IMG/VR virus record: IMGVR_UViG_3300030108_006260
Location: 62,001-126,000 of that record
Strand: one strand, 5' to 3'
Length of the DNA stretch: 64,000 nucleotides
The notes beneath the pieces were generated by a model. It was not told the origin of the DNA. It saw only the letters and a list, made by a program, of their open reading frames with translations, and did no database searches. The position numbers and the translations under genes are program-made. Below are positions 6,027 to 64,000 of this stretch, one piece after another. The stretch's first letter is position 1. Each line of letters starts with the position of its first letter.

Positions 6027-6065
6027 TTACTATAAAATCCTTGGGTTGTAACTAGTGTGAACTAG

Positions 6066-9723: not shown

Positions 9724-11724
9724 TTATGGTTTTATTTGATGAGGAAATCCAAGGTAGTATCCTTGACCTAGAGTAACTCCTAGGCTCAGAAGAACTTTAA
9801 TGTCCTCTTCCGAGTTTACGCCTTCTGCAATGCAGTAAGCTCCTTGGGAGTCAACAGCGGCCACTAACCTAGACAACCTTTCCTTTTTCCATGGAGTAGA
9901 AGAAACATTCTCCACCCATATGCGATCTAGCTTTACAACATCAGGAGCTAGAACGATTACTGCGTTTATGGATGCATAGCCTGACCCCAAGTCATCCATG
10001 GCTAACTTTATTCCGTACTTTCGTGCTGTATTTCGTACATCGATATAGTTAGAATAACTTTCCAGAACTTGCTTCTCGCTAAGCTCAAGGCACACATTCA
10101 TACCTTCAAGAGAAGAAAGAAATTCTTCTGTAAGAGACCCGAAAGTAGCGGGGTAGAGATTCACAGAAGCATGCATAAGACCCTCTTTTTTGGCTGCCCC
10201 TATACAAGTGTCTAATGCTATCAAATCTACCTTATTCAGGATACCGGCTGAAGAAGCCGACCTGAACAGTATGTCGGGGTTGGTGAATACCTTATGACGA
10301 ACAAGATATTCTCCCCCAATAACTTCTCTCGTATTCAAATCAACAATAGGCTGTACTACTGCATAGTACAAAGAAGGGTCGAGTAGGCTCTCCTCCGTCT
10401 CAGAACCAGGGTAGTCATATGGAGTACCTATTACAACTCTATTTTTACCCGATGCCTTTGCTTTCAACAAGTGAGGAGAAGAGAGCCTGATAAGGTCATC
10501 AATACTTGTAATGTCGGGTGTAAGTTCTATAAGAGCAGCACTGGCCGTGATGGGAAGTTCGTGCTCTTCTTGCCTTATGACCTTCTCAGATAGTCTAGAG
10601 GTGAAAGCAGTACACATCAACTCTGCCTGCGCAAGATTATTGGCAAGGAACAGTACTAGGAATTCATCCCCTCCTATCCTAGAAACCCACGCAGGTCTTC
10701 CCATAACAGAACGAAGACACTCAGCTGTGTCTCGTAGAACCCTGTCACCTCCCGCTGTTCCAAGTAAATTATTAAGTTTCTTGAATCCATCCAGGTCCAG
10801 CAGCAGAGACCATCCCCTCTGTGGAGAGGCAGTAACAAGACCATGAAGCTGGTCTAAAGCGTTAGCCAGTCCTGCCCGGTTTAGGGCCTTTGTCAGGGGG
10901 TCTATGTGAACCATGTGCTCCAGCCTGGACCTCATGGATTTTATCTTTTTTAGAGAAGATTCTGCCTCACTAGCCTGGGCAGACACTCTTTGTATGTAGA
11001 ATATGGATATGCCTACAGCAATAGAAAGAGCGGAACCAAAAGAGAACAGAACAAAAACAAGACTTGTTTTAACGCCAGAGGACAGTAGAGCTATACTGAA
11101 GGCTAGAACTATGGATAGAGAGGCGAAGGGTACAATGTAATGAAATCCTTTGTACTCGTTCCTACTTCTTATCCAGTAAGACGCAGTAGAGTAAATAGAG
11201 ACCAAAAAGAAGTTAGTAGCAGTAGGCAAGGACATCTCATAGATGCCAGGCACCCAACTTCGGTCCCCTACAAGATATCCCAAAAGAGATGAAGTTGAAA
11301 TTGCTAAAACTAAAACATATGATGTGGAAGAAAAAACGAACTTCTTACTTATGCGTAAAATGTGAGCTAACCCCATAAGCACAAAGCCTACTGAGGTTAG
11401 AGGTGCTACCTTACTTCCTATGCCAGAAATATATATGAACCCATCTCCCTGTACAAGAGTATAAAACAGGGATAGAACACCTAATCCTACTGAAAGATAG
11501 GCCCCTACGTACGAGGATGGATTCCTTAAACTATAAACTAATACCAGTAATCCAATTGCAGTAACAGGGTGAGTTGTAGCACCTTGGCCAACAAATGCCA
11601 AAAGATAGCTAATACCAAACACCCACCCCAACAAGGTCCCCAAAGAGGTTAGTGCAACATACAACTGAACTACTGTGGCGACCTTACTCAGTAGATTTTC
11701 AAAATGTGTAGTCTCTTTATCCAC
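9724..11724 (-). CDS. membrane-anchored GGDEF-EAL c-di-GMP cyclase/phosphodiesterase
   Basis: About 7 TM segments; DPLTKALNR, DLDGFKKLNN, RIGGDEF; EAL domain with QPIVDL, EYLVR, SVNL, LELSE, DDLGSGY, VKLD, AEGV. Confidence 0.92.
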   Translation of the reverse strand: MDKETTHFENLLSKVATVVQLYVALTSLGTLLGWVFGISYLLAFVGQGATTHPVTAIGLLVLVYSLRNPSSYVGAYLSVGLGVLSLFYTLVQGDGFIYISGIGSKVAPLTSVGFVLMGLAHILRISKKFVFSSTSYVLVLAISTSSLLGYLVGDRSWVPGIYEMSLPTATNFFLVSIYSTASYWIRSRNEYKGFHYIVPFASLSIVLAFSIALLSSGVKTSLVFVLFSFGSALSIAVGISIFYIQRVSAQASEAESSLKKIKSMRSRLEHMVHIDPLTKALNRAGLANALDQLHGLVTASPQRGWSLLLDLDGFKKLNNLLGTAGGDRVLRDTAECLRSVMGRPAWVSRIGGDEFLVLFLANNLAQAELMCTAFTSRLSEKVIRQEEHELPITASAALIELTPDITSIDDLIRLSSPHLLKAKASGKNRVVIGTPYDYPGSETEESLLDPSLYYAVVQPIVDLNTREVIGGEYLVRHKVFTNPDILFRSASSAGILNKVDLIALDTCIGAAKKEGLMHASVNLYPATFGSLTEEFLSSLEGMNVCLELSEKQVLESYSNYIDVRNTARKYGIKLAMDDLGSGYASINAVIVLAPDVVKLDRIWVENVSSTPWKKERLSRLVAAVDSQGAYCIAEGVNSEEDIKVLLSLGVTLGQGYYLGFPHQIKP

Positions 11725-16872: not shown

Positions 16873-16947
16873 TGGTGCCCCGAACAGGAATCGAACCTGT
16901 GACCACCGGGCTTCAACCGGCCGCTCTACCAACTGAGCTATCGGGGC
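16873..16947 (-). tRNA. tRNA-Phe(GAA)
   Basis: Loop TTGAAGC, CCA. Confidence 0.95.
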
Positions 16948-16948
16948 G

Positions 16949-17023
16949 TGGCAGGCCACTAAGGACTTGAACCCTAACTAACGAATTTGGAATTCGTTGT
17001 GCTACCAATTACACTAGTGACCT
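16949..17023 (-). tRNA. tRNA-Trp(CCA)
   Basis: ACGAA-TTCCAAA-TTCGT, CCA. Confidence 0.95.
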
Positions 17024-17024
17024 A

Positions 17025-17100
17025 TGGCGGGAGATGCAGGGTTTGAACCTGCGACAATTGAGTTAACAGCTCACCGCTCTACCAACTGAGCTAATCTCCC
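17025..17100 (-). tRNA. tRNA-Asn(GTT) copy 1
   Basis: Loop CTGTTAA, G73, CCA. Confidence 0.93.
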
Positions 17101-17102
17101 TT

Positions 17103-17179
17103 TGGCGGGCCCTGCAAGAATCGAACTTGCCTTATTCTGGTTAACAGCCAGGCGCACTCACCAGAGGTGCTAAGGACCC
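17103..17179 (-). tRNA. tRNA-Asn(GTT) copy 2 (divergent body)
   Basis: Loop CTGTTAA, G73, CCA; acceptor and D-arm differ from copy 1. Confidence 0.9.
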
Positions 17180-17230
17180 ATTGTGCAGGGAAGCCACTCC
17201 CTGCGGACAAATACGTATTCAGTTTTCAAG

Positions 17231-17305
17231 TGGATCGGGAGGCTGGGTTTGAACCAGCGACATACGGAATCAGAACCCGTCGTTCTACCACTGAACTACT
17301 CCCGA
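17231..17305 (-). tRNA. tRNA-Gln(CTG)
   Basis: ACGGG-TTCTGAT-TCCGT, U1-A72, CCA. Confidence 0.9.
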
Positions 17306-17306
17306 A

Positions 17307-17382
17307 TGGTGGATCTGTGGGGAATCGAACCCCAAATCGTCCGGTTAAGAGCCGGCTGCTTTACCATTGAAGCTACAGATCC
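17307..17382 (-). tRNA. tRNA-Lys(CTT)
   Basis: Loop CTCTTAA, CCA. Confidence 0.95.
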
Positions 17383-17402
17383 AGTACGAGCCTAAGATAT
17401 AA

Positions 17403-17441
17403 AGAACAAAAAAACCGCCGAGGCTAGTGCCTGGGCGGTTC
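17403..17441 (-). terminator. intrinsic terminator of putative attenuator
   Basis: AACCGCCCAGGC-ACTA-GCCTCGGCGGTT (11 of 12 bp paired) followed by TTTTTGTTCT on the minus strand, about 20 nt before tRNA-Lys. Confidence 0.85.
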
Positions 17442-17460
17442 AAAGTAACACTTTGTCGTT

Positions 17461-17595
17461 TTACGACAGGGTGGAACCGCACACACCCGTTGAAATATTG
17501 GTAGACTGCACATCAAAAGAAAACGCAGCAATACTGTCCCGGCGATACGAGCGCCAAGCAGAGCTAAGTTTTATATTTTGATGACGTGTCTTCAT
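17461..17595 (-). CDS. 44-aa leader peptide (uORF) of putative attenuator
   Basis: ATG 17595 to TAA 17461: MKTRHQNIKLSSAWRSYRRDSIAAFSFDVQSTNISTGVCGSTLS; below the 60-aa track cutoff. Confidence 0.65.
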   Translation of the reverse strand: MKTRHQNIKLSSAWRSYRRDSIAAFSFDVQSTNISTGVCGSTLS

Positions 17596-17604
17596 GACTT
17601 AGAG

Positions 17605-17633
17605 AGTATGAGGTATGAGTAGATACATGTCAA
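17605..17633 (-). promoter_or_regulatory. sigma70-type promoter TTGACA-17-CATACT
   Basis: -35 at 17628-17633, -10 at 17605-17610; predicted +1 near 17599-17598, only 3-4 nt before the uORF ATG. Confidence 0.8.
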
Positions 17634-17674
17634 GAAAAAAGTTACTAAGTTGTAGAGAAAGTTAAACTACAACC

Positions 17675-18496
17675 CTAAAGTGCCCAAGGACCTTCTTCTG
17701 ACGTGAACCCGGCCGAGTTCCAATGACCGCCTCCTCCTAGAGATCTTGCGAGAGAAGACACATCAAAGTTAGACCCCTCTTCATCGGAACGCAAGGAGTA
17801 AACGAACAATCCGTTGTTTATCTGCCTCCAGCCTACACTGAACAGGCTGTCTTTAGCCAAGGAGTTTAGTAGCTCTGACACAGCATAGAAAGGTGCGTTC
17901 ACAACTGGGATGTCTGAGTATCCCTTGAAGGTCGAGTTAATAGCCTGTAGCTTCATCTGTTCAACGTAGGAACCCTTGGCACGGAGTATAGCCTCCCCTT
18001 CACTACAAACAACTCCTGGATTTGTAGAAAGGCGATGGTCCAAAAGGTTCCAGTTATCGAAGCTAAAGGTATAGCTGGTGACTACGGCATTGATCTCGAC
18101 CGACTTCGGCACAGAAAACCTCCACAAATCCCTATCCTCCACACAGTCAACCAAAAGAGGTCTCTTAGTGTTCGGATGGAAAAAGTCCCAAGACATTCCG
18201 GCACCCGACCTATCCATGTCGAAAAAGCAACCGGGCATACCTTCAAGGTCGTCTTTTGCAGTTAGGTGGTGGTCCAGCACTGTCAAACTTCGTGCCATGT
18301 CCGAAAGGAGCATAAGGTCGTCTCTTTTATAAGAGAAGTCAAGGATATAAACGTCCTTGTCTGTGACATCCGGAATTTCTAGGTCAGAGTAGTTAACGGA
18401 TTTGTAGTCTGCTCGGTCACCAAACTTCTTGTAAGCAGCCCACGCAGAGGTGAACCCGTCGGGACAATCCCCATGGTATAAGACTAAAGTATCCAT
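17675..18496 (-). CDS. DHH/DHHA1 phosphoesterase
   Basis: LYHGDCPDGF, ILDFS, LDHH, GGGGH..SAGF motifs. Confidence 0.9.
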   Translation of the reverse strand: MDTLVLYHGDCPDGFTSAWAAYKKFGDRADYKSVNYSDLEIPDVTDKDVYILDFSYKRDDLMLLSDMARSLTVLDHHLTAKDDLEGMPGCFFDMDRSGAGMSWDFFHPNTKRPLLVDCVEDRDLWRFSVPKSVEINAVVTSYTFSFDNWNLLDHRLSTNPGVVCSEGEAILRAKGSYVEQMKLQAINSTFKGYSDIPVVNAPFYAVSELLNSLAKDSLFSVGWRQINNGLFVYSLRSDEEGSNFDVSSLARSLGGGGHWNSAGFTSEEGPWAL

Positions 18497-23806: not shown

Positions 23807-23923
23807 GACTACTGACTCCTTTTCGAAGGAAAGGGCAGTATTCTTAATTTATTAAGTTTATATTCTACCGTAGAATTTAATAGAAAAAAGGCCATGTTAT
23901 AATATAACATAACCTTTATTAGA

Positions 23924-61860: not shown

Positions 61861-64000
61861 CTAGTCTTCCACTTGAAATTCTGGACTAGTTTCAGCAATA
61901 ACGTGCCAGGGAGTCCCAGATTGAAGCATGGAGTCCCACTCTTTACACCTATCAAAGATTGGCCTAAGTCCACTACCTACTCCATCCCACCCCAGCATGT
62001 GACCCCATCGTACACCAAAGTCGTAATCAATTTCCATGGGGACAATCATGTCAATACCGAATTCCTCTTTAAGGAAAGAAGGAACTTGGTCTACCATCTT
62101 TTCCTGGAGAACGGATACTACCTCCTGAACCATGTCAAAGTCCATAGGAACTTCCATTGTGATAGCATCATGAACGCAGTTAATAATCTTATAGGGTCGA
62201 TCATTTCTCTCTATCCAGTCCTGGATGGCCCAGGCACACAAAGCGGTAGTATCACTACTCACTGCCTGTATGGGACTGTTACGTGCTCTTCTCTTAGCTC
62301 CATTCTCGTCCTGTTCAAACAGGTCTCTCAAGTGCCTAACTCTACCCATAGGAGTAGAAACGAACCCCATAGACTCAGCTTCTCGTTCGATGTCACTAAG
62401 CCACTGGCCTGCTCTCTCAAATTCATTAACGAAGGTACCCTGTAGCTTTAGGGCTTCGTCGGGTGTAATGCCCAGAAGAGAAGCCAGGGTCTTAAAGTGC
62501 TGACCATAGATAGATCCGAAACACAAACTCTTTGCCCTCTTACGTTCATCCCCCGTTACATCATAAACAGACTTCTGAAACATGATCGAGGCCACCTTCT
62601 TATGTATATCGGCCTCTGCTTTTACTCGATTACCTAGTTCTTCGTCCCCTGTAAGTTTATATTCGTCACGAAGATTTTTCATTTCGTGGAACAACCGGGC
62701 ATACTGAGTGTCACCCGCAAGCTGAGCCCACCAACGAACCTCTGCCTGACCAAAGTCGCACTCTACAAGGATATGTCCAGGCGAAGCGCCATAAATAGAC
62801 CTAATAGCTGCTTTGGCGTTGTTACCCTTTCCCTTGGGGAGCTGCTGGAGGTTTGGGTCCGAAGAATTGTGCACTACAATTCCATCTACAAGGAATGACC
62901 TAGTAGCAGGAACCTCTAGGTCGTACACCTTCTGTGCTCCCAACGATTCCACTCTAATGATTTCAAATGACTTCGAATTTGATTCTAACGCCCAGTGAAC
63001 AAATTCAGCGGACTCGCCGTGCTCTGGCCCAACTGCCGAAGTTACTAGGGACTGTACCTTCCTGGTGATCCTAGCCGTCTTTCTGTTTCGGGCTTTATGT
63101 AATCTATGATAATCAGGTGAGGAGCACCCTTTTCTTCCGATCAAGTTATGATGAATCTTAACAGGCTTCCAAAATGAGTCAAAGTCAAACCAGGAGGGCT
63201 TGAATACACCAAGGTGAATGGAATGCTTACGAATCTGATCTCTTTTTAGAGAGGACCAAAAAAGCCATGAAAGATCTTGGTCATTAGATACCAACACTGA
63301 GTACTTCGTACTGTTACGGTCGGGCCTCTTACTACTGGATATAGAATGGTGAATTCCCAAGCTAGAAAGGAGCAAACCTACTCCCTCTGCAAGTTGCCTG
63401 CTCTCGGTAGAAAGTCTAGGATCTCCAGATGAAGACCCCGCGTCCCCTTCAAATAGACCCTTCAAAAAGGATCGTCTCTCAGACAAACCAGAAGAGAAAA
63501 CAGATTCAGGAACTAAAGCATTCCTAGACTTGTACCCAAAACCGTTCTCGACTAGCCAACGAGATAAATCAACAGAACTACATTCCAGGGTAGGGGAACC
63601 GTTCTCGTAGTAAGAAAACTCTACCCCAAAGACTTCCTTCCACTCTGACGTGAGAAAATCTCTCAGGGGTTTTTCATCCCATCCCAGGGCAATGATAACC
63701 TTAGATGGAACCTTTCCCTTCCTGTTAGGTTCTTTCTTTGTTGGTCGTAGATTGTTGTATCCTATACACCCCTCAGCAACAAAGTGTCCGAGAAGGAATG
63801 CAACTCTGCTGTCCATAGTGGAGGGGAAGGTAGGAGTGTTGGATCGTCCTACAATAGTAGAAGGGGGTGATAGAGTAGAATGATTTGATACATCAGGTCC
63901 CTCTCTACCAGAAATGTAGAGGTCGTCACCCTCTTTCAGGTTCTGTGCCTCCGTCCACTTTCCATCTGAGAATACACGATGAAGGGGTGAACATCGGAGC
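61861..64000 (-). CDS. polA: family A DNA polymerase C-terminal part with intein (5' end off window)
   Basis: SSDPNLQQ, motif A VECDFGQAEVR, motif B RKRAKSLCFGSIYG, motif C VHDA. The frame stays open from 63816 to the window edge (LRCSPLHRVF...WTEAQNLKEGD). Confidence 0.92.
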   Translation of the reverse strand, partial: LRCSPLHRVFSDGKWTEAQNLKEGDDLYISGREGPDVSNHSTLSPPSTIVGRSNTPTFPSTMDSRVAFLLGHFVAEGCIGYNNLRPTKKEPNRKGKVPSKVIIALGWDEKPLRDFLTSEWKEVFGVEFSYYENGSPTLECSSVDLSRWLVENGFGYKSRNALVPESVFSSGLSERRSFLKGLFEGDAGSSSGDPRLSTESRQLAEGVGLLLSSLGIHHSISSSKRPDRNSTKYSVLVSNDQDLSWLFWSSLKRDQIRKHSIHLGVFKPSWFDFDSFWKPVKIHHNLIGRKGCSSPDYHRLHKARNRKTARITRKVQSLVTSAVGPEHGESAEFVHWALESNSKSFEIIRVESLGAQKVYDLEVPATRSFLVDGIVVHNSSDPNLQQLPKGKGNNAKAAIRSIYGASPGHILVECDFGQAEVRWWAQLAGDTQYARLFHEMKNLRDEYKLTGDEELGNRVKAEADIHKKVASIMFQKSVYDVTGDERKRAKSLCFGSIYGQHFKTLASLLGITPDEALKLQGTFVNEFERAGQWLSDIEREAESMGFVSTPMGRVRHLRDLFEQDENGAKRRARNSPIQAVSSDTTALCAWAIQDWIERNDRPYKIINCVHDAITMEVPMDFDMVQEVVSVLQEKMVDQVPSFLKEEFGIDMIVPMEIDYDFGVRWGHMLGWDGVGSGLRPIFDRCKEWDSMLQSGTPWHVIAETSPEFQVED
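62866..64000 (-). mobile_element. intein with LAGLIDADG homing endonuclease in polA
   Basis: Block B-like LRCSPLH, endonuclease blocks FLLGHFVAEG and FLKGLFEGD, block F/G KVYDLEV...FLVDGIVVHN followed by Ser +1. Confidence 0.93.

Follow-up and report, generated by a model that had tools for sequence, protein, structure and literature searches.

The putative regulatory unit described here lies in a 64,000-nucleotide (nt) stretch of DNA, positions 62,001 to 126,000 of the IMG/VR virus record IMGVR_UViG_3300030108_006260, which belongs to an uncultured marine jumbo phage. This whole stretch is called the window below, and its numbering is used for the coordinates. The unit, whose elements are all on the minus strand, combines a promoter, a 44-codon open reading frame (ORF) whose ATG stands almost at the predicted transcription start, and an intrinsic terminator placed before six transfer RNA (tRNA) genes and an RNA ligase gene. 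The best single reading of this leader, and the one with the most economical trigger, is ribosome-mediated attenuation on the 44-codon ORF; on the basis of the folding calculations and of the anatomy of the unit, we put its probability at a little more than one in three (about 0.37). It is likely, at a more general level, that we are dealing with a genuine leader-terminator unit which the transcription of the tRNA block must pass, a judgement that combines the anatomy, the lack of any other sigma-70 promoter and the sparseness of terminators. The evidence consists of one invariant sequence and of the calculations made on it.

Anatomy and competing folds of the leader

The unit occupies the 292-nt spacer that separates a DHH-family phosphoesterase gene (17675-18496) from tRNA-Lys. 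The original prediction had placed in this spacer a promoter, an ATG 3-4 nt after the predicted start site, a 44-codon ORF and a strong terminator with a U-tract about 20 nt before tRNA-Lys, and all four are found there. The promoter, TTGACA-17-CATACT (17605-17633; -35 element 17633-17628, -10 element 17610-17605), is of the sigma-70 type, matches the consensus at 10 of 12 positions and is the sole promoter match in the window with a perfect TTGACA -35 element. Matches of 10/12 to the consensus number seven in 128 kb (both strands), and arithmetic from the window counts gives about 0.016 expected matches of this quality in a spacer of about 300 nt on this strand. The ATG (17595-17593) follows the -10 element by 9 nt (CTCTAAGTC). 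Transcription would start at about 17599-17597, 6-8 nt past the -10 element, and such a canonical start site would leave a 5' untranslated region (UTR) of 2-4 nt, the ORF thus being predicted to be near-leaderless; an unusual start at the A itself is possible. The frame (17461-17595) has exactly 44 codons, ends with TAA (17463-17461) and lacks a Shine-Dalgarno sequence. An ATG at most 14 nt from the -10 element, followed by an open frame of at least 44 codons, is met in 1.7% of shuffled leaders (p = 0.017).

The intrinsic terminator (17404-17441) is built of an 8-bp and a 4-bp stem capped by a tetraloop, with a calculated energy of -19.9 kcal/mol. Its hairpin (17441-17412) reads GAACCGCC / AGGC-ACTA-GCCT / GGCGGTTT and is followed by UUUUUUUGUU, the U-tract (U7) running to 17404. 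The gene for tRNA-Lys(CUU) starts at 17382, 21 nt past the U-tract. An internal C/C mismatch accounts for the absence of this terminator from the output of a simple scan; in a dedicated scan, compact terminators are sparse on this strand and that of the leader ranks among the strongest. The gated cluster, composed of tRNA-Lys(CUU), Gln(CUG), Asn(GUU) twice, Trp and Phe (16873-17382), is without a sigma-70-like promoter of its own. A separate promoter between the terminator and tRNA-Lys would speak against the original prediction; no sigma-70-like site was found in these 21 nt, phage-specific types being still possible; the search for a phage-specific promoter motif by 8-mer enrichment in the intergenic DNA of the window returned tRNA motifs only.

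The competing helix involves the 3' end of the ORF. As had been proposed, GCGGTTC (17480-17474) and GAACCGC (17441-17435), the latter part of the 5' arm of the terminator, are exact reverse complements. In the antiterminator fold (17435-17480; core -17.9 kcal/mol), the GCGGUUC:GAACCGC pairing is completed by CAC:GUG and by the stop hairpin TGTCGT-AAA-ACGACA (17454-17468), which contains the stop codon and is joined to the terminator by a 12-nt linker. The mutual exclusion of the two structures, also part of the original prediction, is borne out by the calculated folds: for nascent RNAs ending at 17435-17424, the minimum-energy structure consists of GCGGUUC:GAACCGC, of CAC:GUG over a 7-nt bulge and of the stop hairpin, is extended by a few outer pairs and excludes the terminator. 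The co-transcriptional folding that had been suggested as a check agrees, the alternative helix forming first and the terminator taking over only once its 3' arm has been made; the minimum-energy fold of the complete transcript includes the terminator. The calculated direct-path barrier for refolding from antiterminator to terminator is 11.4 kcal/mol, a size at which refolding would be slow relative to the transit of the polymerase and which makes the switch kinetically credible. In these models, an undisturbed antiterminator should persist while the polymerase crosses the U-tract, and the removal of GCGGUUC would release the terminator. The stop codon is located 11-17 nt downstream of GCGGUUC, and a ribosome of standard footprint, when its A site holds the TAA, would extend over about 17481-17451 and hence over the entire GCGGUUC strand.

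The pairing was compared with chance by keeping the terminator fixed and dinucleotide-shuffling the upstream RNA. An exact complement of at least 7 nt to the 5' arm of the terminator, situated at most 70 nt upstream, appears in 1.4% of the shuffles (p ~0.014), and the gain in nascent-fold energy as the 5' arm emerges is -11.3 kcal/mol, versus -6.0 ± 2.9 kcal/mol in the shuffles (p = 0.05). None of the signals compared with chance exceeds it by much on its own; more convincing is that they all point to one mechanism.

Two further hairpins are predicted in the leader RNA. A small one, GGGTG...CACCC (17469-17488), carries the 5' strand of the antiterminator in its loop. The other is a long imperfect hairpin (17511-17583) spanning codons 5-29, whose inner part is followed by UUUUCUUUU and may therefore be an RNA polymerase pause signal; a pause at this place could synchronise translation and transcription as in classical attenuators.

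The switch we envisage would operate as follows. The host sigma-70 RNA polymerase would start at about 17598 and make a leader of about 195 nt. GCGGUUC would pair with GAACCGC as the latter emerges, thereby occupying the 5' arm of the terminator, and the polymerase would go on to transcribe the six tRNAs, from Lys to Phe, and the RNA ligase gene. If a ribosome has initiated at the near-leaderless AUG and arrives at the UAA early enough, it would cover GCGGUUC, which would allow the terminator to form and would stop transcription at 17404-17410. Extra tRNAs would thus be made when translation is slow or fails, and their synthesis would be shut off when it is fast. Since there is no separate 1:2 helix in this leader, the absence of translation should give read-through, unlike the situation in trp, and the sensed quantity would be the overall speed of translation rather than one amino acid. 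We infer the start site, the translation of the ORF, the ribosome footprint and the response to tRNA damage; the induction by cleaved tRNAs or toxins, also contained in the original prediction, is purely conjectural. The idea of a feedback sensor was rejected: of the 44 codons in the ORF, 7 are ones that the downstream tRNAs read, versus 14.5% in the phage genes, which is no enrichment.

Copies, relatives and other tRNA promoters

The leader is identical in all 14 recovered copies from the same phage, a variant strain included. This strain (contigs L064 and L065), found via a protein cluster, shows 44 differences in 5.45 kb (0.8%) and not a single substitution in the 1040 nt (17776-16736) which hold the leader, the six tRNAs and the repeats that follow them. 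For the 430 nt of this invariant block that are not tRNA, about 3.5 changes would be expected (P ~0.03), which may be taken as a weak sign of constraint that does not inform us about its nature.

Relatives were sought through the flanking DHH gene, which gave 2 loci in IMG/VR, 30 loci in metagenomes and, in the phage collection, a best match only 45% identical; in the protein collection, the identities of the DHH protein leave a gap between 100% and 56%. The leader of the window was found in none of the DHH-anchored relatives from these four sources. With the RNA ligase as the anchor, only the phage itself was recovered, and a DNA search of the phage genome collection gave tRNA matches only. 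The next relatives, with a DHH protein identity of 54-56%, have a different gene order and a different leader, a conserved element of about 150 nt present in six contigs (L043 6955-7135; L047 7604-7783; L046 8498-8679; L045 7020-7197; L053 3895-4075; L052 4196-4375). It stands directly before tRNA-Asn, with a gap of about 8 nt, in five of the six, inserted genes intervening in L052. Its promoter has a TTGCRY -35 element and an extended -10 element, and in 6/6 contigs an invariant ATG follows 6-7 nt past the -10 element amid variable flanks, a spacing from which we predict a truly leaderless start. The ATG opens a frame of 31-33 codons, which contains a 13-bp hairpin and remains open through two indels, both multiples of three; a second hairpin of 9 bp, whose first base is the last one of the stop codon, displays four compensatory pairs. 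Scans of IMG/VR for this family, by DNA pattern and anchored on proteins, yielded nothing, chance matches, or loci without the leader. It appears to be a candidate for an RNA element that is so far undescribed.

The surroundings of this element in the related phages call for separate mention. Mobile insertions are seen around tRNA-Asn (L047 7770-7907; L052 4360-4975; L049 6600-6950): the tRNA-Asn of L047 is seemingly interrupted past the anticodon stem, possibly by an intron, and L052 and L049 carry ORFs resembling HNH-type endonucleases directly upstream of tRNA-Asn. A transfer-messenger RNA (tmRNA) gene lies beside tRNA-Arg, upstream of the DHH gene (L052 538-953; L049 1885-2282).

In the window itself, two other tRNA promoters have a comparable layout. 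In the tRNA-Pro unit (24102-23999, minus strand), TTGCAT-16-TATACT is followed by 9 nt, an ATG (24065), 11 codons and a TAG (24032-24030) which overlaps a 10-bp hairpin (-16 kcal/mol), then by 8 nt and the tRNA (shuffle p = 0.05); no terminator precedes this tRNA, and a canonical one follows it, with its U-tract at 23889. In the tRNA-Thr leader (58777-58577, minus strand), TTGACT-18-TAGGAT is followed by 13 nt, an ATG (58735) and a 49-codon ORF (shuffle p = 0.004), the stop codon of which (58588-58586) belongs to the 3' arm of a hairpin separated from the tRNA by 6 nt. The codon usage of this ORF is gene-like (0.24 per codon), and it may encode a genuine small protein and share a transcript with the tRNA. 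A start-proximal ATG is lacking at the promoter-like sites that precede tRNA-Leu and tRNA-Ile(UAU). The tRNA-Pro and tRNA-Thr layouts indicate that start-proximal mini-ORFs ending at a leader hairpin are recurrent at the tRNA promoters of this phage; among these mini-ORF leaders, the tRNA-Lys leader alone adds a true terminator and a competing helix.

Arguments against attenuation and rival explanations

Observations on the frame, on the folding and on related sequences weigh against attenuation. No Shine-Dalgarno sequence precedes the ATG of the ORF, and a 5' UTR of 2-4 nt makes a poor start in E. coli-type systems. With the genes and the spurious ORFs of this phage as reference sets, the ORF has a codon-usage score of 0.065 per codon, against 0.26 ± 0.13 for true genes, 5% of which lie below the value of the ORF, and -0.03 ± 0.12 for spurious ORFs, 25% of which lie above it, so that codon usage favours likeness to a spurious ORF over likeness to a gene by about 2.4:1. 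The 44 codons contain no regulatory codon run or class enrichment, the peptide has no homologue in a collection of 5.8 billion proteins and belongs to no Pfam or PHROGs family, and gene callers leave the ORF uncalled at all 10 same-phage loci for which gene tables were consulted. The 5' two thirds of the ORF are strongly structured (z = -3.3); the coding windows of the phage have a mean of -0.54, and 2.5% of them reach -3. As to the folding, the terminator is favoured at equilibrium by 6.2-6.7 kcal/mol, the antiterminator has an equilibrium probability of 2e-4 in the full transcript, and at least 7 bases of the arm find some upstream partner in 40% of the shuffled leaders. As to the related sequences, the copies of the leader, being all identical, leave no variation for a covariation test. 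The leaders of the relatives have conserved hairpins but no U-tract, terminator or antiterminator in any of the six contigs, and a covariance model built from these six finds no match at 17400-17640 of the window, with filters off and at an expectation value (E) of up to 10. Furthermore, the variable columns of the relatives' ORF are distributed over the codon positions as 13/17/12, non-synonymous changes greatly exceed synonymous ones, and the frame is stop-free in 6-21% of column shuffles; the relatives' leader is constrained as an RNA, perhaps also in being translated, and not in its protein.

Part of these observations would fit a stand-alone short gene, a phage small RNA of about 195 nt or a 44-residue micro-protein, of which the terminator would simply be the end, the tRNAs being expressed by leaky read-through or from phage-specific promoters unlike sigma-70. 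We consider this possibility doubtful, although the promoter-to-terminator form resembles that of the monocistronic tRNA-Pro unit, the codon usage of the ORF is not gene-like, and the whole transcript is unusually structured (z = -3.9), the long 5' hairpin being one that could equally belong to a structured non-coding RNA. It leaves six tRNAs and a ligase gene without a recognisable promoter, and both the start-proximal ORF (p = 0.017) and the 7-mer (p = 0.014) without explanation. For a small RNA speaks also the single-stranded linker at 17452-17439, which is perfectly complementary over 14 nt to an ORF of the same strand (5968-5955; E = 0.045), but the match is near chance and falls about 60 nt into the target ORF, away from the start. 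This target ORF starts at 6027, between tRNA-Leu and tRNA-Glu (minus strand), and the match is a weak lead for an action in trans. Terminated attenuator RNAs can indeed act in trans, as does rnTrpL (PMC6614838). Against a small RNA, no Rfam family recognises the leader: at the gathering score only tRNAs are found in the searched DNA, and at E up to 10 the sole matches are RcsR1 (17.9 bits, gathering score 60) and the trpB motif (17.6 bits, gathering score 59), both owing to the terminator. Attenuation and a role as a small RNA need not exclude each other, by analogy with rnTrpL/peTrpL (PMC6614838, PMC7968998).

A terminator regulated independently of the ribosome is, in our opinion, unlikely. 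Here a phage or host antitermination factor would provide a temporal gate, or the leader itself would act, as a put-like polymerase-modifying RNA or as a ligand- or tRNA-sensing riboswitch using the same antiterminator helix. Factor-gate models exist in the delayed-early transcription of T4 and in N/Q of lambda. In favour of such a gate, genes without a promoter of their own lie behind a structured leader flanked by a strong promoter and a strong terminator, the antiterminator/terminator pair would serve any sensor, the long hairpin with its internal loops could be a binding domain, and the coding signals of the ORF are weak. On the other hand, T-box, riboswitch and other cis-regulatory Rfam families are rejected for lack of a match at E as high as 10, the present analysis yielded no candidate for an antiterminator protein, and the open frame that runs from the start site to the stop hairpin would remain unexplained.

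It is very unlikely that the terminator does no more than close the upstream DHH operon, perhaps as the second of a tandem, with promoter, ORF and 7-mer present by chance. Such a coincidence could invoke the seven promoter matches in 128 kb, the fact that each single signal reaches only p 0.01-0.05, and the breadth of the scan behind the original prediction, which covered 64 kb for anything unusual, but only about 0.016 such matches are expected in the spacer on this strand, the signals are mutually independent and converge on one mechanism, the spacer is free of substitutions in the strain whose flanking positions differ by 0.8%, and the promoter-ATG-ORF-hairpin layout recurs at two other tRNA promoters.

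Genomic setting and relation to known systems

The IMG/VR contig of the phage measures 240 kb, and the same phage is present in Tara Oceans assemblies of up to 340 kb. ARAGORN finds 27 tRNA genes, nearly all in one minus-strand region, and a replication module is present that includes gyrase subunits, a Rad50-like ATPase and a family A DNA polymerase; the gene for this polymerase (61861-63816, minus strand) is split by an intein with a LAGLIDADG domain. Upstream of the leader, a hairpin GTTGTAG...CTACAAC (17649-17673, minus strand) immediately past the stop codon of the DHH phosphoesterase gene, followed by a T6 run (17640-17635), is probably a weak end signal of the upstream operon. Downstream of the six-tRNA block, a two-copy 26-nt repeat precedes the RNA ligase gene (16725-15739). 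The original prediction had seen in it a CRISPR (clustered regularly interspaced short palindromic repeats) unit, a label which we reject: several regularly spaced repeats are lacking, and the window holds only the two copies, at 16842-16817 and 16784-16759 (minus strand), which differ by one base, are 58 nt apart and lie between tRNA-Phe and the ligase gene.

Other features of the tRNA region deserve to be recorded. A protein with GGDEF-EAL domains (cyclic-di-GMP turnover) is encoded beside it (9724-11724, minus strand). A class II (long-arm) tRNA-like sequence at 13408-13328 (minus strand) was overlooked by ARAGORN and scores 40 bits with the tRNA-Sec model, like the Ser tRNAs of the phage; its loop CUGUAAA suggests a tRNA-Tyr(GUA). 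Further stretches that are not tRNA lie at 15733-15626, 12586-12470, 12320-12175 and 11990-11800 (all minus strand). Among them are a promoter-like TTGACT-17-TAGAAC, directly followed by a half-tRNA-like sequence and located before the odd tRNA-Ile(UAU), and two GC-rich spacers. A tRNA-like 3' fragment (GGTTCGATTCC) precedes a terminator at about 11797.

Attenuation by a leader ORF is textbook knowledge; the classical cases are the enterobacterial trp, his and pheA, and pheST controls a gene of the translation apparatus. Like these, the phage unit has a promoter-proximal short ORF followed by an intrinsic terminator, its alternative helix uses the 5' arm of this terminator, a ribosome reaching the stop codon is proposed to favour termination, and a hairpin with a U-run, located within the leader, could cause the polymerase to pause. 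Unlike them, it has a near-leaderless ORF without a Shine-Dalgarno sequence, of 44 codons instead of the usual 14-30, and contains no regulatory codon run; the lack of a separate 1:2 helix would lead, when translation is absent, to read-through and not to super-attenuation, and the controlled genes are phage tRNAs. In T4, the tRNA cluster is delayed-early and is reached by read-through from upstream early promoters, its control being attributed to Rho-dependent polarity and to middle promoters. There too, phage tRNA genes are without a host-type promoter of their own and their transcription must pass upstream termination signals, but for T4 the control is not ascribed to a leader ORF dedicated to it and to a pair of antiterminator and terminator.

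Mycobacteria possess leaderless short-ORF attenuators, where the ORFs are polycysteine ones (bioRxiv 10.1101/834739). As is predicted for the phage, the short ORF opens the transcript or stands close to its 5' end; as in the phage, it has no Shine-Dalgarno sequence, and its own translation controls the downstream genes of the operon, which is only proposed for the phage ORF. The mycobacterial ORFs differ by their runs of Cys codons and by belonging to an organism in which a quarter of the messenger RNAs are leaderless; the phage AUG is predicted 2-4 nt from the 5' end, and no codon run accompanies it. In Sinorhizobium meliloti, rnTrpL/peTrpL are an attenuator small RNA and a small peptide (PMC6614838, PMC7968998). 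The terminated phage leader could likewise be a functional small RNA in itself and encode a small peptide; it has no sequence or family relation to rnTrpL/peTrpL, and an action in trans would have the borderline 14-nt match as its sole basis. The tRNA-Asn leader of the relatives shares its order of elements with that of the window: promoter, ATG at the predicted start site, short frame enclosing a large hairpin, stop codon at the base of another hairpin, and tRNA. It differs from it by the lack of a U-tract and an antiterminator, shows no detectable similarity to it in sequence or by covariance model, and bears no trace of selection at the protein level. Full-text searches of a library of papers found no attenuator before phage tRNA genes, which is not a proof of absence.

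In conclusion, our analysis bears on the expression of phage-encoded tRNAs, which are currently regarded as a means of coping with codon mismatch and of resisting host anticodon nucleases; to our knowledge, almost nothing is known about how this expression is controlled. Could the phage gauge the translational capacity of the infected cell by means of a near-leaderless mini-ORF, and set the output of its tRNAs and of an RNA repair ligase through a terminator/antiterminator switch? Such a loop would also fire when tRNAs are cut or depleted by host defence, and start-proximal mini-ORFs ending at a hairpin may recur in the leaders of phage tRNA operons, as in the three described here and in one conserved family in relatives. 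Taken as a whole, this picture is a tentative one, and we hold it to be on the unlikely side. If it is true, these tRNA genes, placed behind a unit of only about 250 nt built from host-type signals, would be the first under leader-ORF attenuation and would reveal a demand-driven control by a phage of its translation resources.

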